Assembly: GCA_963924565.1 (NCBI GenBank)
Contig: OZ004614.1
Coordinates: 16,554,001 to 16,618,000 of the forward strand
Origin: Ascidiella aspersa
Taxonomy: Eukaryota
DNA: 64,000 nt
Direction of reading: 5' to 3'
Below the pieces are notes generated by a model. The model was not told the DNA's origin and ran no database searches. It saw only the letters and a program-made list of their open reading frames with translations. Position numbers and translations under genes: made by a program. Below, piece by piece: positions 1,773-28,100 of the stretch; positions within the stretch are counted from its first letter, which is position 1, and every line of letters begins with the position of its first letter.

Positions 1773-4700
1773 GTGAGAGAGACAGTTGTTGTTTTGCGCT
1801 CGGCTGCTTCACTGTAACCTACTTACACTTGCAAAATGCGCACCCCTGTGTTGCCAGCGCCTGGCTTCAGGCATGCGTTACGCCCGGGACATCCGATGCT
1901 GGAAAAAGTTGCGCGGTTTCTTTAGGTTTGCTTTGACTACCTTTTTATCTTGGTTGGCGCCGCCTGGCGCGTTGGCTATCATGTGCCACAGCGGTTACAT
2001 GGGTGATAAAATTAAGTCACCCTTTACCCCCGATCACCCCGCACCCTCACCGACTGCGCGACCCTATAAAGTGACTCGTCGTTGTGCAGGAAATTGCTCA
2101 GTAAAGGGCAAACAGGCCGCTTGTAGTGACTGGAAGCTTGTCTATCCTGTTGTCACCTATTCCAACACGCGAAACTCAAACACTTTTGACCTGGGCTAAA
2201 ATCTCCCCTGCTTAGTCATATCGCGGTGGGTGCCCGAACACTTGAATTGGCTAAGCGGCCTATTCATGGAGAATAAATAGGACCAAAGCGTTGAACGTGT
2301 TTAAATATTGAAGTTTACCAGTAGCCTTTTCGCGATTCCATACGTGAGCTGTATATTAATACGAAAACCAACTACCTAAATCTAAAGCTATTAAATTTTA
2401 CAAATGTTCGGTTGACGAAGTGTCAAAAGAAAACAAACAAACATCGATTCTTGCAACAATCGAGTGTCGGTATTTTCGATAATGTACGTGTTTACTTTTC
2501 AATGACGACAAATCGGAAATGGCTGTTTGGCTTGCGGCAGGGCCATGGACTTCGAACGACTATTTGTTCGTGGCCACTTAACCAAGCCTCCGTCGGAGCC
2601 GTTTTATAGGGTACTTGAACGGTAAAGCTCTTTATATCAGAATGCTTCTAGATCCAAGTAAGATAAGGTAAACAGATCATAAATATCCAATGATTGTAGC
2701 TAAAATATTGTGCAGTAATATTCCATATAATTGTTTAACATCGCGCGTGTTTGACGAACCATTCGCCTTTCCCGTTCTTTCAGCGTGTATATTTATAAAC
2801 ACTTCTGATCCTTTGTCATTCAAGCGCATGGCGTATTGCTCTTCCCGCCATTTTCCAATGTTCATTTCCTGGCGTTTTCATGTTTTTTCAGTGACGTCAC
2901 ACCAATTCCATTGTGACGTAACAGCAATATGTGGGGGCCTTTGCGCGTGAATGCCTCAGACAGTCGGGGATCACAGATCAAATTAAACATAATTTGATTT
3001 GCTGTTCCGTAACACGCTAAAATAGTGGCGGGCAAAGAATCGTTTATCAGGGTATGAATATTGCGATACCTGAAATTTCTCCAAACGCTCTGCTGATCAA
3101 ATTATTTCCTTTATTCTATGTGTAAGGCGTGCATTCGTGTTTTTAAATGAGACCTGAAACGCCCAAACTTAAAAGTGATTTATTTTCCCCATAAAAAGTA
3201 TCTACAAAAAGTAAAATCTCCCATTACGCTCGATAGTCAAATGCTTTTCTAAAAATCCAAACTTCGTTTTTTGCTATTTAATGACCGAATTAACAATGTA
3301 GGACGACGTTTCATTTGGACAACATTAAAACAAATCTTAACCTTGAATTAAAAAAAATATTTCTATATCTTGTTGCTTCTTGTTTGTCTGACGTGAGGTT
3401 TGCGAGGGATTTTATTGAATATCTAAAAAAACGAACTCGGCATTTCGGGGCAAGACGCTTTTGAAGCGCGGCGTTTATAAAGTGAAGTATGTGCACGTCA
3501 AACATACAAAGAGAAACTCGGACACCTGGACAAACAATTTGCTCTTGTTTTCGCTGTACTCGTCTTTTCAGGCAAGTGCAAATCAACTGGGACTCGAGCT
3601 GAGCGTAATTTGGCACCCCATTGTAGTGGTATAGCATGATGTGAATTATTTTCCCGTTTGCGGTACATTGTATAGTCATGCTTTATATATAGCAATAACC
3701 ATCACCGTTTGTAGCTTGACTTGCTGTGAAATAGAAGGCCTTTTATTTTTGACGTTAACAACTATAGACGCCATTAGGCCGTTATTTGTTATAGTTTTAT
3801 TGACTTTCGTGCGAGAAAAAAATGGTAACCGGAAACAGCTATCAAGCTGACAGCAGCATGATTTGATCTACATGAAATGGGTACAAACTAGCAATTAGGT
3901 GTTTTATTAAGAACAATTGTATTACAAAATACTAATAAAACTTAGGCTTAAAACAGAACTACGTCCAACAAATTGCACCGTTATATCGCGCGAGTTTTCA
4001 GTGCTTGCCAGCGCGCTTAATAAATGGCAGCACCGCACACAGGGCCAAGGCCAACGCTAAACGAGCGGGGAGCAATTTCATGGAGCAGACCTTGTTTGTC
4101 GCGTAGTCGGATACACGGAAAGCTACTTAACTAATCCACTGGTCGACGCCTGATGCCGGCTCATAAGGGCAACGCGACGAGGCAAAAAGGACCTCTTTGT
4201 CGCACATACGGCCAATTGGGCCGAAACAACAAGACGGCAAATATGTGTACGTGATACACCTATAAAAGGTTCAGACATTGTCACATTGTATAGCGTCAAC
4301 GCTACGTGCTAGGTTGTTTTTTGTTTGTTATGACACAACCTAATTTGTCAAACAGATAGATTCGTAAGAAAATTTAAAACCCTAAAGCGTAGTTCACTCC
4401 CGTCTATTTGCACTCCCTGTTGTAATCGAATTAAACTACAATTATTGCACCGAGGTCCAGAAACCGTTTTTACTACGTGAATGCGTTGGTACTCCTCGTA
4501 GTGGATTAAAGTTGTGTGGCGCGCACACATATCTAAATATTTTTGGCAGTTTCGGGGCTTGCCTGGGGTTAATTTATTTTGCCCCCGTGTCGGCCTTTGA
4601 ACGCGCAGCCGTCCTCTTTGCACAGCGCTACACAACAAACACAAACCAACTCGGGCCTTTGTCTTCTCGGTTTCAATTTGTAACGTCATTATGCCAGCAT

Positions 4701-7700
4701 CATCGTCGGCTTGGGCTAAAACGATGATGACCTGTTGCGCTTTGATCGCCATTCGAGCAAAAACATTGTCAACAAGGCAAACAGTGGGTGTTTAAACAGA
4801 TTTCGCGCCGTGGCCCTCTCCATCACAGAGGCGCAATTGGGCAGGAGCCCAGTTATGCACAGTGCACATATAAGTATAAACGCGGCGCCCCCATTAAGCT
4901 CTGTCCATTCTATATCAAAGGAAGCGCGTCAATGCGGCCTCAAGTATTTCTTTCTTTCGGGCAGTTATACGACGGAGTGATATTGTTTGTTCGGCACTTT
5001 AGAAATCAAATGTGGTGTGAACAAGCGTCGGTCTGATGTTGTTTTACAGAAAGAACAATGCGTTAAAATTTTTTTTTTTCGGTGAATATTAAATAGTAAT
5101 TCCTATAACGGGGCGAAATACTAATTTATGCACAAAATGTTAGATTACTATAAGTTAACCCAAAACACTCACCAACAAAACATTGGGGTGAAACTCTCTT
5201 TATTTTAACTTAAAATAGTTTAGACTTCCGGTTGAAGGACATGAAGATCAGGTTCAGGCTACTTAACGTATTCCGTTTTTGTTCCAGGGTCCCATGGGCG
5301 AATACTACATGAGTCCAGAAATCAACACAGCTCCGATGAAAAACGTCTCCGCTGACGTATCGATGCCCCCTCCCGCTTTCCAATCACGGCCGACCTTCGC
5401 ATCTGACCCAAGCACCTTCCGACGGGAGAGCGCTTCCGACATTCACGACATACTTAATTGTCCGCGCACGCCGTGCCACGGTACGAACGAACTTCGGGCG
5501 GGAATTTGTTTTGAAGTGCATTTGGCACCACTTTGCATTTCATTCAGTTCCTCGGTGGAAATGCTTTATACATGCACACTTATCGTTATTTACCGAAGAA
5601 ATTCAATTGGAACAAACCTTAGCGTTGAAGGCCCCACTTATTTAACCATATTGTCTACGGATTAGGACATTTGCACACTAAATACTAAATCGTGTGTAAA
5701 AAAATATTTATAGTTAGTTAAAATATCAAATAAATGTGTTGCTGTTTCGCACAGGTTTCCTCAACAACAACTGTCAGGCGCACAACTCGAACGTCTACCA
5801 ACAAGCGAACAACTACAGCAACGTGGACACCGTCGGCAACATGTCGTGTCTCAATCTCAACTTCAACGTGGTGGTCAAGCAGCAAAACACCCACCACTTT
5901 CACGGCGCATCACCACAGCACTCGCCTAGTCGCGATGTGCAGACGCAGGGATCCGTTTCCCCTCCAATAAGCCCTAACAACATAAACAGCAACATCCCGC
6001 CTGTGTCAAGCTTTATCAAGGCGTCGGATGCAGTACTTTACCCTTCCTCCCCCATCTCCAATGCAGCCATCTCACCGGTAAGCTCACCAATGTACACTGG
6101 CAACCAAGATGCGACTATGTACCAGAGGTCGCGACTTTCTTCTGAATCCGAGGTCTGTTTCGATCAGCGCAGACATGCGTCCCTTCCTTCAATCGCCGTC
6201 ACGGCCCAAGATGAGAGCAACCAGATGAATTTCTACCAACGGACAAGATCGACCAGTCTCACCACAGATCGGTGCTCGCTTCCTTCAGCTTCTCCCAACC
6301 CGATGTCACCTAGCCACGTTCCACCTCAGGCTTGCTCGCCTGTCAACCTCATCTCGAGGCAACAGCAGTACCCAGTTAAAAGCGAGGTCGTGGAGTGCGT
6401 GCCCAGCATGCAGGGCGCCTGGGAAAACCAAGCGTTGCCAAACATGCAGTTTGAAAGCGCGACGCCGGCCGCATACCAAAACGCTAGACGATGCAGCACC
6501 GAAGTAAATCCGCAGCTGAACGGACACCTAACACCGAAAGAAGAGAAGCAGTCCTTTATTGAAACCCCTTATACTAATACCAACAATATAAGCTACAGTG
6601 AAAGCAACTTTCCCCCAAATCACCAGCCCATCTTCCCTCCGCATCAGATCAACTTCCCTTCCATTCTTGATACGTCCGCCGAACCCGGTGCCATCCAACA
6701 GCAGCAGCACCAACAACACCATAACCAGATGCTGCACCAGCATCACATGCACCATCATCACCATCACCAGCAGGAGATGCAACTCCAGCAACAACAGCAG
6801 AGAAGCGAGTTGACCCAACACCGACGTCACCACCCTTACATGGGAATGACGGTGCCCCCCTCTTACCCAATGGCAGTGAACGGCACGATACCGTACAGGC
6901 CGAGGTACAGTCGCCGAAACAACCCCGAGCTGGAGAAGAAGCGAGTCCACAAATGTAACCACACAGGTATATATTTATTCTAATAGTCTCAAGTTTCAAA
7001 CCAACCGAATATAACCATAGCGCAGCTTTATGACAACCTGCTTTTTCTACTGCACCTAAATTTATTTGCGGGCAACAGGGTACAGGCATAATACGCCTAA
7101 TGCAAACAGTTACAGGCAAAATGTATTGCTTTGCTCCAAATGTCGCATCATCGGTGTCAGTGAGCATTAGGGGTAGTCGGTAATCTCCCAAATTTTGCCT
7201 TACGCTCTTGTGGGACGCGCGCCACGGAAGGGCGTGTTGTTTTCCGCACTGTTTCTCCTGATTTTTAGCTCGATTAAAAAGCGAAGGGTAATTCCTTACT
7301 TTTCACGGGAGCAACCATTTTGAACCTTAACCACGCGGCAGTAACCGTCGTGCAATTGCCACAGCTCGCAAGTACTGCTTGGTTGAAAGGAATGCGGCGT
7401 GGCGATGTATGGCAACAGTGATTTTAGGTAGCGACCGGCAGTAAGCCCCAGCAGCCGCACGACACGCTTAGCGTTGCACGCGAAAGTTTTTTTGGCTTTT
7501 AGACGGGGCCTTTTTCTTCGAGGGGTCAGGGCTGTTGACAGGGGCGGCCATGCGTGATGGGGTGCGTGCAGGCGGCGAAATGCCTCTCACCGTTTTCGTG
7601 CTAGAAATTTGATTAGCCCGTAACGTTTACGGCGCCAGGTTTTCCTTCAGAGCGGAACATGCTGGGAGTGGTGGTCAACCTTGGCTTTAGACTGATGCGG

Positions 7701-10225
7701 CGAAATAACCTGCGCATCACTGAATCGATATGCAAATAATTTAGTCTAACATTAAAACACAACAAGTACTTTCTTTGCCATGTTTGTGTATATATGATTT
7801 ATTGACTTAAAAAAATATTGTAAACAAATATAAGCCGGCTTATAATATTAATTACGCGCAATTTTGATATCTGCAATATTTGTTTTTCCGTGGTTTAAAC
7901 AGCACTGCGCAAGCTAAATACGAGTCTTGTGTTTGTTTGCATGTTTTTATTTTAGAAGCCCGAAACAAAAACATTTACAAACAGATTTCGGAAGTGGGCG
8001 CGAAATTTACGTTCGGCGCAACTTTTGAAATCGCCCGATCTCTTATCATTTTATCAACAAACAGTAACGAGCATAATGTGAGCACTCATTATCGCCCCAA
8101 AGGTTCCAGCATGCAAATCGCGCGGCTTCGCTCTGCTCTGCTCGCTTGTTTACGTAAATGCGGGCTACGGGACGACTCAGAATGGCCAAAGCCGGTCACG
8201 ACTTTTTGTGATAATTTTTCCGTGCCGTCTTAGTGTTTTATTACCGAAATTCCCCGTTGCGCGACCGTAAAGCTTACCCCGCTAGCTATAATCTAGACTC
8301 TATATAACAACACGCGAACTTGCGCAACGGCAACGCACGTCCTGCCGGTCGGTTGGTCGGTCCGCATGTTTGTTTATGTCCACCTCTCTCGCGGCGTCAG
8401 TTTTCCGCTAAAATTGCGGCGAAATTCTTTAAGCGCATTTTCAAGCGACGCCCATTTTCCGCGCAACACAGTTCAGTCGGTTGACTAGCAAAAGCAGAGC
8501 TAAATGCCGTGTGCATGCGTGTGTGCGATTTTAAAATCAATTCGAGAAAACCAAGCCAAACAGTAAAATTTAATTTCAAAATTACTCCCCTTCCCCTCTA
8601 AGTAATGAACTAAACCGATATGCATGGATGGGTGTGATTATAGTGGCATTTGTGCTTATTATTTGTGCTATTTATAGGTGTGCCACGAAAATTAGGACGT
8701 ATGGGGTTGAACGCATTCTTGCAAGGGCTTTGTGTGCAAACGCCGCACAAACTCTAACCGTTACTGTTATGTTTCTTTTGCGCAGGATGCACCAAAGCCT
8801 ACACGAAGAGTTCACATTTAAAGGCTCACCAACGAACCCACACAGGTAAGAAACTGTACCCTAACCTAGTATAAAATCACCAATAAAAACAGAATAACCA
8901 AATAAAGTGACAAAAATTAACTGACCATAATGGTGACGCGTGACCACTAAATAAAAAAATATTGCTGCATAAAAACTGATATTGTGTGAATTGTAATGCA
9001 GCCCACTGAACCTCGCAAAACTAAATCATGAGCATACGAAATTCATTTCTTTCAAATTTAACAATAATCTGGCGATACAACAAAGTCTCTAGATCTAGAT
9101 GTTTTTGCCAAGTCTGGCGCCTGGATAATTACGGGGTCATCTTTTCTGGTCTCGCATGATTCCACTCACGGAGCGCATGCTTTTCCGTCGCTACGCTTCA
9201 ACGAGCACATATGGAAACTGCTCGAAATTGGGCCTGACGTAGATGGGGCCAACTGACAAACAAAATTCCTTTGTGCCCCTATAGCTAATGTAACGGTTGT
9301 TTTGATGCTAAAATTTTGCTTTTAGGGAAAAAAGTGCTGAAAGTGTAGTAAACTTAACCATTGCAACGTAGGAAAGCAACATTTCCAGCACAGAAGCTAT
9401 TTATTGTTATCTTTTGAAAGAGTAATAAAAAACGCAACATGGAGTAAACACATTTTAATTGAGTTTACAATTCTTATAAAATTTCGATATTTTAGCTTTC
9501 AAAGGAAAACACGTCTAACAAAAAGACACTTTTCACAGTCAGTCGGAGCCGTGTATAAGTTCTACCCGACCGACCTTGTATGGCCCTTTGAAATGGCTTT
9601 GTTAAAAATAATACAACAACAAAGTAACAACAACAAAGCAAGGCAATTGCGTCATTCGTTGCGCTTGATGGCCGTAAAAGGAAATAAGTCAGACGACTCG
9701 GGGACAAGTCTAATAGAAATCAATTTATGCATAAACTTGACAAAAGAATGAATTTGTGGCTCTTCACTCCACATATCTCGTTGATCTATTTGCGAGAAAC
9801 GCCAATGCAGATAGTTGACTGCCGTATCTTACTCAGGATATTTCAGTTTAATTGAGCGAATACAAAAATAAAATGTAATATTTTATGTGTGAGCATTGGA
9901 GCATAATGGTAGGAAGAAAAAATTGAAATGAATAAAGGGTTATTCGAAACGTTTGAAACGATACCTACTTCTATACATGAGCTTTGATATTTGTAAGCAG
10001 TTCCCAACCGCCTGACGACGCTCAACATTCTCCTTTTGTTTTCCAGGCGAAAAGCCCTACACGTGCAACTGGCAAGGATGCGACTGGCGATTCGCGCGTT
10101 CCGACGAGCTGACCAGGCACATGCGCAAACACACCGGAGCCAAGCCCTTCAAGTGCCTTGTATGTGGAAGGTGCTTCTCCCGGTCGGACCACCTCTCCCT
10201 GCACATGAAGCGACACCAGGCCTAA
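1575..10225 (+). CDS. KLF5: Kruppel-like factor 5-type C2H2 zinc-finger transcription factor (spliced; 613 aa)
   Basis: Exons 1575-1772, 5288-5480, 5755-6966, 8786-8845, 10047-10225 join in frame (phases 0,1,1,1; 1842 nt), all GT-AG. C-terminus [100 protein letters not shown]. The RYxRRxNPxLEK pre-finger segment, GAKPF linker and upstream PPSY match vertebrate KLF5 as I recall it. Confidence 0.92.
5288..5480 (+). CDS. KLF5: KLF5-like coding exon 2
   Basis: Acceptor ttttgttccag; [11 protein letters not shown]...RTPCH; donor CG/GTACGA; phase 0-1. Confidence 0.8.
5755..6966 (+). CDS. KLF5: KLF5-like coding exon 3 (S/P/Q-rich region, polyQ/H, PPSY, start of finger 1)
   Basis: Inside the 415-aa ORF; acceptor tttcgcacag, donor AG/GTATAT after KCNHT. 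Confidence 0.92.
6697..6800 (+). repeat. Coding CAG/CAA/CAC/CAT low-complexity tract (polyQ/polyH)
   Basis: [35 protein letters not shown]. Confidence 0.9.
8786..8845 (+). CDS. KLF5: KLF5-like coding exon 4 (60 nt, finger 1)
   Basis: [21 protein letters not shown]; acceptor cttttgcgcag, donor AG/GTAAGA. Confidence 0.95.
10047..10225 (+). CDS. KLF5: KLF5-like last coding exon (fingers 2-3, stop)
   Basis: [24 protein letters not shown]...[17 protein letters not shown]; acceptor ttttgttttccag. Confidence 0.95.
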
Positions 10226-20235: not shown

Positions 20236-21277
20236 CCGAACAAGCGAACGCTAGGCGCTAAATAACGCAACAAGTGAAGACAACAATTACAGTTACGAGA
20301 ACAAAAACAAGCGGAATTAAAGTCAACTAAAATATCATCATAACAAATTTTGCATTCGAAAAAATAAAACACGTAACAACACACAAAAAAGGACAAAGGC
20401 GCCAAATACGAAAACTTAACATTAAATGATCAAATCGAGGAAAAATGCGACAACCTGGTACTAGCGGATTAAGGAAACTAAAAAGGCGTTTGACACAATA
20501 AGAATAACATAACAATGTGCCGGCCAGTACAATATAAACGAATGTATTTTATTCCATCACCTCACAGCACACTTTCTACACATGTATTTAAATAGCAATA
20601 GTTCAACAAACAACACAAAGATTTTTTGTTTCGATTTAAAAAAAAGAGTCACAAAAAGCGATAAAAATAGTCTGGGTGCGCAAAAAACATTATATAACGA
20701 AGCGATTTTTATGCAAGTAGTAAGTATAGTGGTGCTAGTACGAAAATTAAAAAGCATTTGAACTAAAAGCGGTACGCGACAAGGATCTGCGACAAGCGAC
20801 GTGAAACTTTATTGGCGCTAGGTAAGCGCAAAAAAACAAATAATTATTATCACTCGCGGCGAGGGTTGGTGGTTATCGAACGATATGATATTACCACAAA
20901 ATAAAAGTTTTCTTCGCGTAAAGTACGTCGGCACGATTGAGACGGCTGCCGTGTGAAGATTTCGTATCGTTTTACTGCGCACAGTGAAAGAAGTCGAACC
21001 ACCTTCGTCCGACAGAGCAGCACTTAATTTGTGTGGACAGATAAACTACAAAGGCTTCGATGATTGATTACCGTAAAAACAGTTTCGGTTTTGCTTGGAG
21101 CAGCTAGACCAACACCAACTTTACTATACACCTAAAATATGTTACCGGTACTTAAACTTATTTGATGACCCGATTCCAAGTGAAATGTTTATGATAAAAG
21201 TGTTGCTGTGCTTAATTAGTGATTTTTAGTTTATTAAAAGAAAATAAATTCGTTAACATCTTGTGCTTTGACACCTT

Positions 21278-22189
21278 TTAAACATTAGTATTAGAACGAA
21301 TCGCACTCGAATCGTCCAAGTTCAACGACGTGTCAAAAAACAGCGGCTGCATTTCCTGGGCCTCCGAGGAATGCTTGGCGCTTCCCTGGGACCGCTTTTG
21401 GCGCCGGGGCCGCTTCCCCTCACCCTGGCGCCGTTTGGGACGCGACTTGTGATGTTGATCGCGGATAAGCGAATCTTCCTCCTCCGCTTCCGAAAGTGAT
21501 GACATCGACAAACGTTCACTTGCGAGACGCACCGGAGGAGGGGGAATACCCTTATGCTCATGGTACGGTGCGCCATCGCGTGGCTGTTCCACGCTAAGAG
21601 CACTTCCGGATGCCTCGCTCAAATCGGAGGTCTGGTGATGGTGGTTGATGAGATATTGATCCGGATGAAACTTTGCGCTTCTGGTGGGACACGGCGTCGG
21701 CATGTTCACCTCGTAGGGTTGGTTCAGGAGAGACGAGTAAGAGTTGTTGGCGAGGGCTGGAGGAAGGTCTTCTTCCAGCACTTCTTCGTCCTCGCGGAAC
21801 GCGCGCAGCTCGTACTCTGTTGGAGGAGGAGGCAGCTCCGAGCCGGAAGAAGAAGACTGTGGACATGTGTCCGAGGTGTAAGACCGTGATCCACTGGTTG
21901 ATGAAGACTCTGGCTCTTCACTGGTTACACCAGCAGGAGGGGACTCGCGGACTATGCCCGTCAAAATCTCCTCAGCGTCAACGCCTTTATACTCATCCGC
22001 CCTTCGCGATCCGTGAACATTTACCGGATGTTGGAGGTCGTGTTGATGAAGAGGATGTCGGTAGCGGGAAGAAGCGCTGCTTCGGAGACTACTATTGCGA
22101 CTGTCGATATCTCTTGCCCTCGCCTCTGCTCCTCGTTGTGAATTAAGTATGATTCGGGTGATGCATAGTTTGTCCTCTTCCGGGATACT
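21278..22189 (-). CDS. FAT-like last coding exon
   Basis: SIPEEDKL...ELPPPPTE...FHPDQYL...RSNTNV-TAA; open across 912 nt from acceptor ttaataccag. Confidence 0.85.
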   Translation of the reverse strand, partial: SIPEEDKLCITRIILNSQRGAEARARDIDSRNSSLRSSASSRYRHPLHQHDLQHPVNVHGSRRADEYKGVDAEEILTGIVRESPPAGVTSEEPESSSTSGSRSYTSDTCPQSSSSGSELPPPPTEYELRAFREDEEVLEEDLPPALANNSYSSLLNQPYEVNMPTPCPTRSAKFHPDQYLINHHHQTSDLSEASGSALSVEQPRDGAPYHEHKGIPPPPVRLASERLSMSSLSEAEEEDSLIRDQHHKSRPKRRQGEGKRPRRQKRSQGSAKHSSEAQEMQPLFFDTSLNLDDSSAIRSNTNV

Positions 22190-25100
22190 CTGGTATTAAG
22201 AGTTGAATTTATCGGATTTTAAGATTATTCTAAGTTAAAATGATATTCAATTTTACATAACGACGACGATCACATATACTTTTAGACTTTCCTGTCTTAA
22301 TGAAAGTCATTAATAAGTTCTAGTCTTGAGACTGATAATGCCATATTTTGTGGCGAAATATATTTCTCTGTTAAAAGACTAGAATTTATTAATGACTGAC
22401 TTTGACTACGACAGAAAAGTCTAAAGTATATTTGCTCCCATTTGAAGCCATTGTCGTCGTTTACGCGTAAGGGCGAGGAGATATCTTCCTATTTTACACA
22501 TTCAGTTTGTCATCAACGACAACGATCACTTTACATTTATTAAAGAAAGACAACAATGGCCAAATAGCGAGTTTCATTTGTCCCCTTCTGCCTTAACAAA
22601 CTAAGCCAAGGGTTACCACCTATCTATCGTCACGCCAAATAAGCGGGCAACGCATCTTCCTACCTCTTCCTGACGAACTAGTTGCAACAGCTGCTTTTCA
22701 CGTCGCCTGCTTCGGCTGTTGCAGTAGTGGCCTGGGAGCGCGTCGGACCGGTTGCTACGACGACTGCGATTAGTGGCGACGCTGCTGAGGCTGCGTCGAG
22801 ACTCGGGTGAGCTGGGCAGGTCGCTGAAGGCGCCCCGACCACCGCTGGCGCAGCTTCCCCCAGGGACCCCGGGGCCGCCCCCGCACGCCACGTTGGCAAC
22901 CGAGTGCGGAACGTGGCCGGAATCCTCTGGCTTCCAATCGGTGACGTCCCAGTCATAACCTACGAACGAAGACTAGAGGTTAGTCGAATGATTTGCGAGG
23001 TTCAAACGTAAAACGAGTCCGCAGTTCAAACAGCAACGTGAAGAAGTCAATGTGGCGATGAAATTAATATCGAGATGTTAACCTTTCTAATAAATTGTCA
23101 TCATTTTCGAATTATTGCATTGTTCTGCCTAAATGATTTGTGGGATTTGAATTTGTTCGCATTTATCACCTTTATTGTTGGAATAGTTATTTTACATATA
23201 CAGAAAACAGAAGTCCCTGCTAAACAATAATACAGCATACGCAAAAGTTATAATCTATTCCGCAGGTTGTGCAGCCCTGATTTAGGCCCAATTTTCATGT
23301 TAAGTTACTGTCATGCTCAGCTGTGCCAAAATAATCAAAATGAAATAGTAATGATTAGCACCATACGGGAAACAAAATAACATCTCCGAAGTCAGTCTAA
23401 TAGTAAAAATGTAAATGTGCTATTTCTATCAAAAAAATCACAATGTAATTTCACCTGTCCCACAAAAATGTGATCCCAACAATAAGAACAACAAGACGAG
23501 ACAAGACAAAAAAACTTGAAACAAAATCGAATTGTGATGAATACAACAAATATAGCAGCATTCACAATACACATTCTTTTAATAAAAATGTTGAAAGAAA
23601 AAAAGGTTATGAAAAAATAAAAGTAATTAAAAAGTTAACGCATGCCGGAATGGAACTGTAAGTTTAAAAAAGCAAAAATGTCATGCTTTTAGTGCGTTTT
23701 ATTAGCAAGGGATTTTGAGTTTCATGCGTGGGAGTTTCACCTCTGCGCGGCAGATTCCATATTGGCGGACGGGGACTTTCCCGTATAACTGCAGGAGAGA
23801 AAACGAAACATAAACAAGACGACCTACTAACTATGATTAAGTGTGCTTTGTAATTATAATTTGATAAAAAATATTGAATTTATTGAGATCAGTTGTTTGA
23901 AGGAAGACTAGAAATTATCACTTTTACAGATCTAACCACCTTTAAAATATAAAAACACCATTAGGGTATATCAAACAAAATATATATTATTTGATTTAAG
24001 TGATCGATATAGCTATTAAGCACCGTCGTTTACCGTCAAAAAGACCACTATACAAATACACGACACAAAAACGTAGCGCTGTAGAAGAGATTATTACGCA
24101 CTAATGAATGATGTTGGATACACTGTTGCAAGAGCGAACAGCAACAACATCGTGATGTTTATCGGTAAACTCATGTTTGATGTGAACTTCAGATCTTTTA
24201 CACAAGTGTTTTTATCCAGGAAAGTTAATTAAAATATACAAGCAAAACTGTGGCATGATTTGAAATACTGAGAATAACATCAACCAGTCGCAACTGTATG
24301 GCCGCTATGACGTTCCTGTGAAGTCGTTTGACTTTAATGGGACACCACAAAAAGTAAAAGGTAATTTTTTCAAACGTGGAAAACCATTTGAAATAGAACA
24401 AGACCAACTTATGCTACAAAGTCTCTTGGAATAGGGAAGCGCGTGCATCGCTACGTTCCGTAACGAGTCAACATGTAAACGTAAAGTCCATTGGGTAAAA
24501 TTGGTAAACTGGGTAAAATTGGTAAACTGTCCGTTTACCGAACTTCACTTCTTTAAATAGTTTTAAATTAACATAGAAAAATAGAACGAAGCATTTGGTT
24601 TCAAAAGACGCAGTTGCAAAGTTAACAATGGTTTTAATATCTTCATTTTTCTACTACAAATATTAGTAAATCACTCGCAAACAAAGCAAACATAATAATC
24701 GGGATGAAACCTACTTTGTTGATCGTTGATGGAATAGTTGCTCGTCTTGTAGCGATCCGAGCGACCATGGCGGCCCGACGACGAAGCAGAATCGTTGTAC
24801 TGAATTTTTGGGGCACACACTTGTTAGTTGGTAAAACGATCGGACAATTAATGGTAGTTCAGGGTTTTACAGCGTCCAGCACATATGTTATGATTGCGCA
24901 ATGCACATTTTGTAAATATAAAGTTATTAAGTTAATTGTGCAATATTGCTTAAACCAGCTGTTCCAAAAGTCAAATACCACTTGCATGTGTTTTAATAAT
25001 TATTAATCGGTACCTTGCAACGAATCGCTTTAAATCGATAAACTTTACAAGACAACGGACCAAGTAAATAAAAAACAATAAAAGTAATTTCAATATAGAG

Positions 25101-28100
25101 AGGTTTAATGAGATGGGTTAACTTGTTTCACTTCATTTCGATTTATTTATGTAACTTGATGTTGGGACTAAAAGCTTTTCGTTTGCGAACCCCCTTGAAC
25201 TGATTCACGAGCCCGACTTTGGAAACAGCTTGCTTAAACAATTGCTTTTGGGGAAAATCCGAAAAGCAAGTGTTGACTATCGGAAAATATTGTCACTTGT
25301 TAAACGTCTCAGTCAGTCGAGTGCGAATTCATAATGGCAGTAATTAGCGAAACGGGTTAAGGCGCTACAAACAGCATTTCAATTAGTTTTCATAAAAGTT
25401 ATCGGCTATACTGTAGCAAGGTAGTTAAATAACGTGAAAATACAACTGTCAAACATACTTTAGGCGTCGAATTTAAAATAGTCGTTAAAACAAATTTGTT
25501 GAGCAATACCTTAGCTGCGTCGTATTCCTGCCACGAAGGAGGAGGCTTCTGAATTGAATCGTTGTCCGAGGCGGAGAACGACGGACTAACAGCGGGCAAC
25601 TGAGGTCGAACGTAGCAGAGGGGTACGCGTGCATCCTGGGGGGCACGAATGAGGGTAAATGCGATGATTTTGGTAACAAATTGCGATCAGGTTTGGAGGT
25701 ACGGTTGACATTTGATTTCCAAAGCAAAGTGGGTGAATTAGGCGTATGAAAAAGGTGTCAATAAGTTATTAACATAGGTGTAACTGGGCGGAGGTAACAC
25801 AAATGATAACGTTGCATATAAATGGCGCCATAATCTCATTAAAAGAAATGTGCGTGGTATTTTGGCTAGATGTATGAGGGCATGAGTCCAAATGAAAAAT
25901 GAGGAAAGAAGAGAAGAAAGAAACATAATTTAAATCTGGAGGAATGACATAACACTGATAAGTAAAAGTTGAATAGCGTTATTCGATGAAAGCAATAAAT
26001 TGTTTTAAAAAATGCTACTGAGCTTGCAAAACATTACTTAAGACGGTCTTTAGGATTTTATAACAGTTTAATTTCTAAAATGAGAAAACTTCTAACTTTT
26101 ATAATCAATATATTCAGGAAGCAATTATTAAGATATACCTGATCTCCAGTCCCCTCTAGAGGAAAAGAATCTCTCGAGCTTCTCTGATAAGCGGCGGGTC
26201 GTTCCGGAACGCGAGGAGCATGCGGTGAACTGAAATCTGTTTTAAACGAGGATTAAGGATTAATGGTAAGAAAACTAACCAGGGCTTTCCAAAAAGAAAC
26301 ACGTAGGTTACAAAATGCTTAGATGGGACAAGTGTAAACCAGATTCAATTCAATTAATTTGTAGAACTTTAAAATAACCAACTATTGTTGGCAAGAAGTA
26401 CTTGTCGTGCAGTGTACTATTAAAGTTAATACAAGAAATGTGCAATAACACATCAGTAAAAAACGTGTAATAGTTTCTTTCGCAATGCACTTTTATACCT
26501 GCGTTGTAGGGTACAACCGGTTGAATATCCCTGCTGCATCGACTGCCTCGCCTGTACTTGGAATCGTGCAATCTCTTCCGACGCCAAAGGAACCCGGCCA
26601 ATACGACAAGCCCGATGAACAAAATGATCACGCAGATGATTACGATGATCAACACTGAAACACTACTCGTGGTAGGTTCTGGTTTCTCCGTCGGGTTGAG
26701 AGAAATGGGACAGCGAGGGTCTGCACAAATTAAAAAATACTGTTTGCAAAACACATGAAATTGCTGACGATGCACAATAAGGTTTGCTAACAATTTTTTG
26801 TACAATTCTTCAAGTGAACTAATAAGAAATTCAATGTAACAGTTAGGTATTTTAACGTTGAGCATTACTCGCGGCCAAATAATAGACCTTAAGTCGGCTA
26901 AATTGGTATAGTTTCGTTCAAGCGTGAGGCAAATTCTCGCATTGAACTAAAAAAATCCCACTATGAACATTGGTAAATCAAACCATGTCGACTAAGTGGC
27001 AGCAGCGATTTATGCTCACCAGGTTTAGGCGTGGTGCAATTGCACGCGTAGCCGCCGTCAAAGTTATGGCAGCTGCCCGCTTTGTTTCCGCAATCCTTTC
27101 GCGCCGCCTCCGTCGCACACTCGTCAACGTCGATCTCGCAACGTTGCCCGCTCCACCCGGAGGCGCAAAAGCACGAGGGCGTGCCCGCCACGCCCACCAC
27201 GCACGTGCCGTGGTTCCGGCAGCGGCCGATCGCATGACACGCCGAGGGAGTCTCGCATCGTTCGCCGGCGAAGCCAATTGGGCACTTGCACCTGATATAA
27301 TGGAATAAATTGCTGTTATCATTGCGCAGTTTTCTAACGACCTTCGATAAACGAGGTGCGACCATTGCTTATAGAGAACCAAACTATAGTTTTCTTCCGA
27401 CAGCCCAATGTTTTAAACTTTATCTATACTGATTTCATATGTTTTTGACTTTTTATTAATTTTATTATTACTTTGCTATGTATTTATATGTATTTTACTT
27501 TACTTATAGGAAACGATGGTACCAGTATAGACGAAATAAATATTTTTGAAAATGTATGATTCTTGATTTACTCTTGTTTAATATAAACATAACATCTTTG
27601 GATAAATGTGGGCGTAAGCTTTTTTTGCTGCGTTAGAAAGTAATTTTCTGTAGCATTGGCACTAAATTTATCGTGACGAAACTACGCTGACATCTTGTGG
27701 TATTGCCAATCGACGTAATCAATCTTCTTATTGTATGTTGTTTTGTGTGACATAAGGTCAAAACAATGACCCGAACCTCATGTTCTTTCCCTCAAACAAG
27801 CAAACTCCTTTGTTCTGGCAAGGCCAGCGAGCGCAAGGGTCCGCTTCTTCGCAATGGTCGCCGTTGAACTGCACAGGGCAGTTGCACACGTAGGCACCGT
27901 CGCCGTGGGGAAGACAGGTGCCCCCGTTTCTACAAGGTTGGTGGAAGCAGGCGGCCATACTGATAAGCTCGTCCGTACACCTGCCGAAGTTAAGTGGTCT
28001 TCAAAATTGCAACTAGTACTAGCGTTCGAGAATTGAATAGCGTCTTATTGAGTGATAACTAACTATCGAATGTACTATAAAATAAAGGAAATCATAGACG

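Follow-up and report, generated by a model that had tools for sequence, protein, structure and literature searches.

A small optional exon in the cytoplasmic tail of an ascidian FAT1-type cadherin, at the site of the vertebrate FAT1/FAT3 tail inserts, and its putative Rbfox enhancer

Results

The tail exons of the FAT1-type gene

The subject of this analysis is a 64,000-nucleotide (nt) stretch of the genome of the ascidian Ascidiella aspersa (contig OZ004614.1, positions 16,554,001 to 16,618,000; we refer to the whole stretch as the window and give positions in its own numbering) and, within it, a 48-nt cassette exon in the part of a giant FAT1-type cadherin gene that encodes the cytoplasmic tail. 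The gene lies on the minus strand: cadherin repeats are readable in the open reading frames of the window from ~55 kb to 30 kb, a Laminin G domain (Pfam PF02210, E 1e-15) is encoded by the open frame 29807-28296, and after it come first EGF-like exons, next the transmembrane exon (near 26.6 kb) and then short tail exons, which encode a Y(D/H)WDxxDW motif and a C-terminus of the form T-x-V. Of the named proteins, the nearest relatives are those called 'protocadherin Fat 1' in Ciona intestinalis, Phallusia mammillata and Clavelina lepadiformis, in agreement with a preliminary description of the window, made from the letters alone, that had placed the exon in a FAT cadherin. Identity over the Laminin G exon is 47-55% to Ciona, Phallusia and Clavelina and 27-28% to fish Fat1a and snake Fat3. 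Exons were queried one by one, with no joined spliced model, and junctions were compared using database proteins. As the exon that carries the tail motif (the YDWD exon, immediately 3′ of the cassette) occurs once in the assembly (a single match in a search covering 308.6 Mb in 75 contigs), the window holds the sole FAT1-type (FAT1/2/3, Fat-like) cadherin gene of this ascidian genome. A profile search with the last exon returned 16 matches, all of them tunicate-like tails, and reached no vertebrate tail.

The cassette has a long pyrimidine tract at its acceptor (gtttcgttttctctcctgcag, ending ctcctgcag, with TGC at -5) and a weak donor, AGAG/gtgaaa (slashes mark exon-intron borders), in which A replaces the G common at +5; its five neighbours among the tail donors read gtataa, gtatat (border shifted +1), gtattg, gtaggt and gtagga. 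Its frame is open in phase 1-1, so that inclusion and skipping both keep the reading frame. Inclusion puts a basic, Pro-containing 16-residue peptide directly before YDWDVTDW, and the residue preceding the Tyr is Ser when the cassette is skipped and Gly when it is included. The exon, its pyrimidine-rich acceptor and its phase had all been proposed in the preliminary description, and all are present in the minus-strand sequence.

The cassette is both included and skipped

Four sequencing runs were mapped on positions 21200-26700, runs X1 to X3 as Logan contigs of one study and run X4 as raw RNA reads of a second. Runs X1 and X2 cover exons and introns evenly, without joints at the tail exon borders, and are DNA-like. 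In run X3 exon depth is 37-65 against an intron depth of 8-21, and GT..AG joints occur at seven places that fit the reading frame; run X3 therefore contains cDNA, and the tail exon borders given in Table 1 were set from its spliced contigs. Two of these joints include the cassette (24715>23788, depth 17.4; 23741>22959, depth 9.6) and one skips it (24715>22959, depth 18.2), which, as a crude ratio of contig depths, puts inclusion at ~35-50%. The short flanks (26-30 nt) of the cassette joints are as expected at a branch point of a k=31 assembly graph. Since both kinds of joint are found in one sample, isoforms with and without the cassette coexist: the 48-nt exon is real and optional, and both isoforms are made. 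The cassette status claimed at the outset, for which an RNA check across 24715-22959 had been suggested, is borne out by inclusion and skipping joints of similar depth in the contigs of run X3.

A retrocopy or a DNA-level deletion as the source of the joints is ruled out, as runs X1 and X2 are without joints and the downstream exon is single-copy. Among the differences listed for runs X1 to X3 none falls in the cassette or in the three GCAUG motifs that follow it, but only about two would be expected there and the listing leaves out 43 further differences, so this is uninformative. The RNA reads of run X4 in the FAT gene are largely intronic (23960-24695 and 25616-26351) with the first mate always on the plus strand, and look like unspliced minus-strand pre-mRNA.

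Table 1. Features of the FAT1-type gene and of the cassette region in the window.
Feature	Position	Strand	Basis and remarks
Giant FAT1-type cadherin gene	repeats readable from ~55 kb; coding part ends at 21281	minus	Repeats, domains, tail motif
Tail exon	ends 26499	minus	Spliced contigs of run X3
Tail exon	26236-26139	minus	Spliced contigs of run X3
Tail exon	25635-25510	minus	Spliced contigs of run X3; joint 25510>24799
Upstream constitutive tail exon	24799-24715	minus	Joints of run X3; ends with first base of split codon; donor AAA/gtaggt
Intron 5′ of cassette, 926 nt	24714-23789	minus	Joint of run X3; long pyrimidine tract, TGC just before AG
Cassette micro-exon, 48 nt, phase 1-1	23788-23741	minus	Inclusion and skipping joints of run X3; starts (I), ends (G)
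Intron 3′ of cassette, 781 nt	23740-22960	minus	Joint of run X3; weak donor gtgaaa
GCAUG no. 1	23727-23723	minus	+14, cGCAUG; position kept in L001
GCAUG no. 2	23686-23682	minus	+55; preceding base a
GCAUG no. 3	23645-23641	minus	+96, GCAUGC; preceding base g
YDWD exon, 3′ of cassette	22959-22664	minus	Joints of run X3; starts (G/S); single match in own genome
Last coding exon, 303 codons	22189-21281	minus	Joint 22664>22189, depth 64.9 (side 255); ends …NTNV + stop, PDZ-ligand-like

Two introns of the gene stand out for other reasons. The last one contains, at 22304-22671, a high-copy interspersed repeat, where contig depth reaches 9065 in run X1 and 4691 in run X2 versus ~95 and ~53 nearby, and where the contigs show many loose ends and replaced letters. 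In the intron 5′ of the cassette, runs X1 to X3 show 11-12-nt insertions and several substitutions relative to the window at 24035-24052, and this intron is highly polymorphic. Elsewhere in the window, on the plus strand, an open frame at 10016-10222 encodes tandem C2H2 zinc fingers of KLF/Sp type; the gene to which these fingers belong may have a further exon upstream, in an open frame at 5718-6980 that encodes 421 residues rich in Ser, Pro and Asn.

A GCAUG cluster follows the exon

The preliminary description had reported three GCAUG motifs in the intron downstream of the cassette, and these were read on the minus strand at +14, +55 and +96, with the exact 41-nt spacing it gave. GCATG occurs 41 times on the minus and 46 times on the plus strand of the 64,000-nt window, yet only 14 of 63,900 sliding 100-nt windows on the minus strand hold at least three copies, all 14 of them at the cassette intron, and the plus strand is without such a triple; the Poisson probability of at least three GCATG in a given 100 nt is 3.7e-5. 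GCATG is found in positions +1..+150 after none of the five other verified tail-exon donors. By these counts, and by its recurrence in the orthologous intron of another ascidian (contig L001, described below), the cluster is non-random and conserved.

Two further features of this intron fared less well. The 41-nt periodicity was rejected as meaningful: spacing in L001 is 8 and 123 nt, and no underlying repeat was seen on reading the sequence by eye. The QKI-like motifs CTAAT (+36) and ACTAA (+48) are present in the window intron, but were rejected as a conserved element, L001 being without ACTAA in +1..+150.

Micro-exons that depend on SRRM3/4 are at most 51 nt long and have a UGC close to the 3′ splice site. 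The cassette, though real, could have its inclusion set mainly by an SRRM3/4 (eMIC)-type neural micro-exon mechanism via the acceptor UGC, or by QKI/MBNL/RBPMS-type factors, with the GCAUG motifs playing a minor part; its length of 48 nt, its UC-rich acceptor tract with UGC at -5 and the QKI-like ACUAA (+48) and CUAAU (+36) all fit, and the exon of rat Fat1 requires four factors jointly (PMC12721327). We nevertheless consider such control unlikely. The acceptor TGC is not conserved, the nearest upstream TGC in L001 lying at -36, the missing ACTAA in L001 counts in the same direction, and GCATG is the only non-U-rich 5-mer that occurs at least twice in +1..+150 of both introns (three times in each).

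The cassette in other ascidians

Five Fat 1-like protein models of Clavelina lepadiformis were compared. Among the RefSeq gene models, isoforms X1 and X2 read …FSDQQ-IVDFRRHGLRGRPYT-A-YDWDITDW, isoform X3 and one GenBank model read …FSDQQ-T-YDWDITDW, and in isoform X4 the YDWD-type motif was not matched within the last 700 residues. Isoforms X1 and X3 differ solely by the 15-residue insert, equal to a 45-nt cassette at the same split codon. Two of the Clavelina models (P0027 and P0024) show a second, 5-residue tail difference at residues ~4369-4374, ~120 residues upstream of the cassette, which may be another splice choice. Three Ciona models (P0004, P0017 and P0019) end in …DITLI, not in T-x-V as do the window, L001, Phallusia, Clavelina and vertebrates, a difference that could reflect faulty gene models or a genuine loss of the PDZ-ligand end.

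One scan of metagenome contigs yielded L001, which comes from another ascidian and carries the orthologous locus; its exons follow in the same order, and its protein identity to the window is ~53% in a neighbouring ectodomain exon. The intron that separates the …SINDQ exon (donor 4630) from the YDWD exon (starting at 5836) in L001 cannot otherwise be aligned to the window intron, and holds a candidate exon of 45 nt at 4998-5042, AG/GT-bounded and open in phase 1-1 (K-TRMHNDKLKNVPYR-G), followed by GTGAAGCATGTTCGCATG. The end of the window exon, its donor CAGAG/GTGAA and the cGCATG at +14 align gap-free with L001; nothing in the L001 intron matches a pre-set query (exon plus 30 nt) better than this island, whose score is reached by 3 of 500 dinucleotide shuffles. 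The L001 intron has GCATG at +6 (5048), +14 (5056) and +137 (5179; part of TGCATG). The gene strand of L001 has 20 GCATG in 17.3 kb. No two of them lie within 20 nt of each other, and no three within 150 nt, except in the group that begins 6 nt past the candidate exon. A GCATG cluster is found in the one orthologous intron obtainable (1 of 1). Past the donor of its upstream constitutive exon, L001 has a further GCATG (4645, at +16) without counterpart in the window.

The three ascidian inserts (window, Clavelina and L001) share little and resemble each other weakly; all are basic, with Pro four residues before the Tyr and a small residue directly before it. Judged by the Clavelina models and the L001 candidate, the cassette recurs in other ascidians. 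It might still be a non-functional cryptic exon or a product of low-level splicing noise, given that it was seen in one run only and its peptide is poorly conserved; this we regard as very improbable, because inclusion and skipping joints reach similar depths, the cassette preserves the frame, Clavelina RefSeq isoforms carry a 15-residue insert at the same place, and L001 keeps the donor and the +14 GCAUG despite its divergence from the window.

The insertion site in vertebrate FAT1 and FAT3

Six vertebrate proteins were examined, five of which have a Y(H/D)WD-type motif. Snake Fat3 isoforms X1 and X2 differ solely by 20 residues (…SGDDN-insert-A-YHWDTSDW), a pair that fits phase 1 without proving it, and in mouse Fat1 and Fat3 alternative exons are inserted between the exons that jointly encode the DNXYH motif (PMC5082931). 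On these comparisons the ascidian and the vertebrate FAT1/FAT3 insertion sites coincide to the residue, directly before x-Y-(H/D)-W-D, as the preliminary description had supposed for FAT1; the vertebrate inserts at this junction are +12 and +32 in FAT1 and +32 in FAT3. Its statement that the vertebrate exon is an RBFOX target likewise finds a counterpart in the literature, where the rat Fat1 36-nt penultimate exon is jointly activated by RBPMS, MBNL1/2, RBFOX2 and QK (PMC12721327).

In mouse, the insertion at DNXYH abolishes Kif5B binding and changes localisation (PMC5082931). The Kif5-ID pattern and DNxYH were found in none of four tunicate proteins versus four of four vertebrate skip-form tails, and disruption of this motif as the function of the tunicate cassette is therefore unsupported. 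By eye, the ascidian inserts are not like the snake Fat3 insert.

Discussion

Rbfox bound downstream of an exon activates its inclusion. The motif bound by Rbfox proteins is GCAUG (PMC11874969). In the A. aspersa genome, a ten-residue pattern of the Rbfox RRM motif has one match, and the open frame at this place gave six PDB matches, all six to RBFOX1, RBFOX2 or C. elegans ASD-1 (best E 1.2e-11); by this evidence the genome encodes an Rbfox RRM exon at one locus. A Pfam Fox-1_C search of the genome gave no match, but its controls were silent too, so it had no power.

We think it reasonably probable that the tail exon is an Rbfox-enhanced cassette whose weak donor is aided by the downstream GCAUG cluster. 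Having a good acceptor and a weak donor (no G at +5), the exon would depend on a downstream enhancer; Rbfox on the GCAUG motifs at +14, +55 and +96 would promote use of the donor, and inclusion would follow the expression of Rbfox, high in its presence and low in its absence. The basic spacer of 15-16 residues placed before the invariant YDWDxTDW would probably alter access to, or the context of, the Tyr/Trp motif. The proposal of Rbfox control in the preliminary description has gained in its sequence components (the cluster is unique in the window and recurs in L001 with the shared +14 position, and the genome has an Rbfox RRM), whereas Rbfox binding and dependence, tissue specificity and an effect on FAT localisation or partners are what we infer beyond them.

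Several observations weigh against a conserved, Rbfox-enhanced switch. The nature of run X3 as RNA is deduced from its own spliced contigs, and it is one run of one study, without tissue label; run X4, the sole run recorded as RNA, gave 31 reads, none of them in 22856-23959, too few to inform on the exon. In Ciona (three of three tail-bearing models) and Phallusia (one of one) the protein is recorded in the skipped form only. The L001 exon is a candidate, its island has E = 1.8 in a plain intron-versus-intron blastn, and the L001 intron contains 22 AG..GT open segments, and 26% of its positions fall in the 20 nt that follow a segment of this kind. The high-affinity hexamer UGCAUG is not formed by any of the three window motifs (preceding bases c, a and g); L001 has one copy of it, at +136. 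Finally, given the acceptor UGC already described, other regulators may dominate.

Whether the switch was inherited from the tunicate-vertebrate ancestor or the same intron was recruited independently, we hold about equally likely. On the side of inheritance, three ascidian lineages and vertebrate Fat1 and Fat3 all place their insert at one and the same residue, within or adjoining the codon that precedes Y(H/D)WD, and share the class of regulator, implied or shown. It is possible, and we put it forward tentatively, that the junction before Y(H/D)WDxxDW was an Rbfox-controlled switch already in the tunicate-vertebrate ancestor, where selection has kept the split and the GCAUG enhancer while the inserted peptide turned over. 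Alternatively, and here we would give even chances, the tunicate cassette and those of vertebrate FAT1/FAT3 had separate origins in one and the same intron, at a junction that tolerates insertions and with GCAUG enhancers that evolve easily, so that no switch was inherited. Such an origin is in keeping with insert lengths that differ (tunicate 45-48 nt vs. vertebrate 36, 56+40 and 60 nt; PMC5082931, PMC12721327), with the dissimilarity of the tunicate inserts to the snake Fat3 insert, with DNxYH and Kif5-ID being confined to the vertebrate skip forms in our comparison, and with the lack of a recorded Ciona or Phallusia protein bearing the insert; short alternative exons lose similarity fast, however, and dissimilarity is weak evidence.

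In vertebrates, the choice of FAT1/FAT3 tail isoform determines the destination of these giant cadherins in migrating cells and neurons, and the FAT1 +12 exon belongs to the splicing programmes of the epithelial-mesenchymal transition and of smooth muscle; FAT1(+12) is found in several tissues and FAT1(+32) in brain (PMC10297709), and FAT1+12 is more included in the mesenchymal state (PMC3158048). If the ancestral reading is true, regulated switching at this junction of a polarity and adhesion receptor goes back more than 500 million years, and its function could be dissected in a simple ascidian embryo. With one FAT1-type gene, one Rbfox gene and electroporatable embryos, an ascidian allows tests of where the switch came from and what it is for, and provides a concrete case for the wider question of whether alternative-splicing 'hot spots' and their regulators predate the exon sequences. 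The vertebrate switch and its dependence on RBFOX2 are already in print and the Clavelina cassette is silently annotated in RefSeq isoforms; in the literature searched, no paper on a FAT tail cassette in tunicates was found.

Among the closest known systems is the pair formed by Clavelina isoforms X1/X2 and X3, with the same gene, the same site, the same split-codon pattern (I… at the start, a small residue before Y) and Pro at -4 from the Tyr, although the Clavelina insert has 15 residues (45 nt), is otherwise divergent in peptide and is known as an annotated isoform. Rbfox-activated cassettes in general resemble the ascidian cassette in being alternative exons with a weak donor and several GCAUG motifs less than 100 nt downstream, conserved in an otherwise unalignable intron; they differ in that the window motifs are without the leading U and Rbfox dependence is here predicted from sequence. 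Mouse Fat3 (+32 amino acids) and snake Fat3 isoform X1 (+20 amino acids) carry inserts preceded by …DDN and followed by (A)YHWDTSDW, a residue position shared with the ascidian; the articles consulted do not document Rbfox regulation of these Fat3 exons. However, mouse Fat3 uses two obligately paired exons (24.1 and 24.2, 56 + 40 nt; PMC5082931) and the ascidian a single exon of 48 nt, and the snake insert (SIVTVIQLVNNVVDTIENE) is hydrophobic and acidic whereas the ascidian inserts are basic and contain Pro. Vertebrate FAT1(+12) (Braun et al. 2007, via PMC5082931, PMC10297709 and PMC12721327) differs in its length (36 nt vs. 48 nt in the ascidian), in breaking a DNxYH/Kif5 motif that was not found in tunicate tails, and in being encoded by a penultimate exon, whereas in the ascidian a further intron and exon follow the YDWD exon. 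Like the ascidian cassette, it is a small frame-preserving tail exon, set before (G)YHWDTSDW; its inclusion changes FAT1 localisation, and the rat smooth-muscle exon depends on RBFOX2 together with QK, MBNL and RBPMS (PMC12721327).

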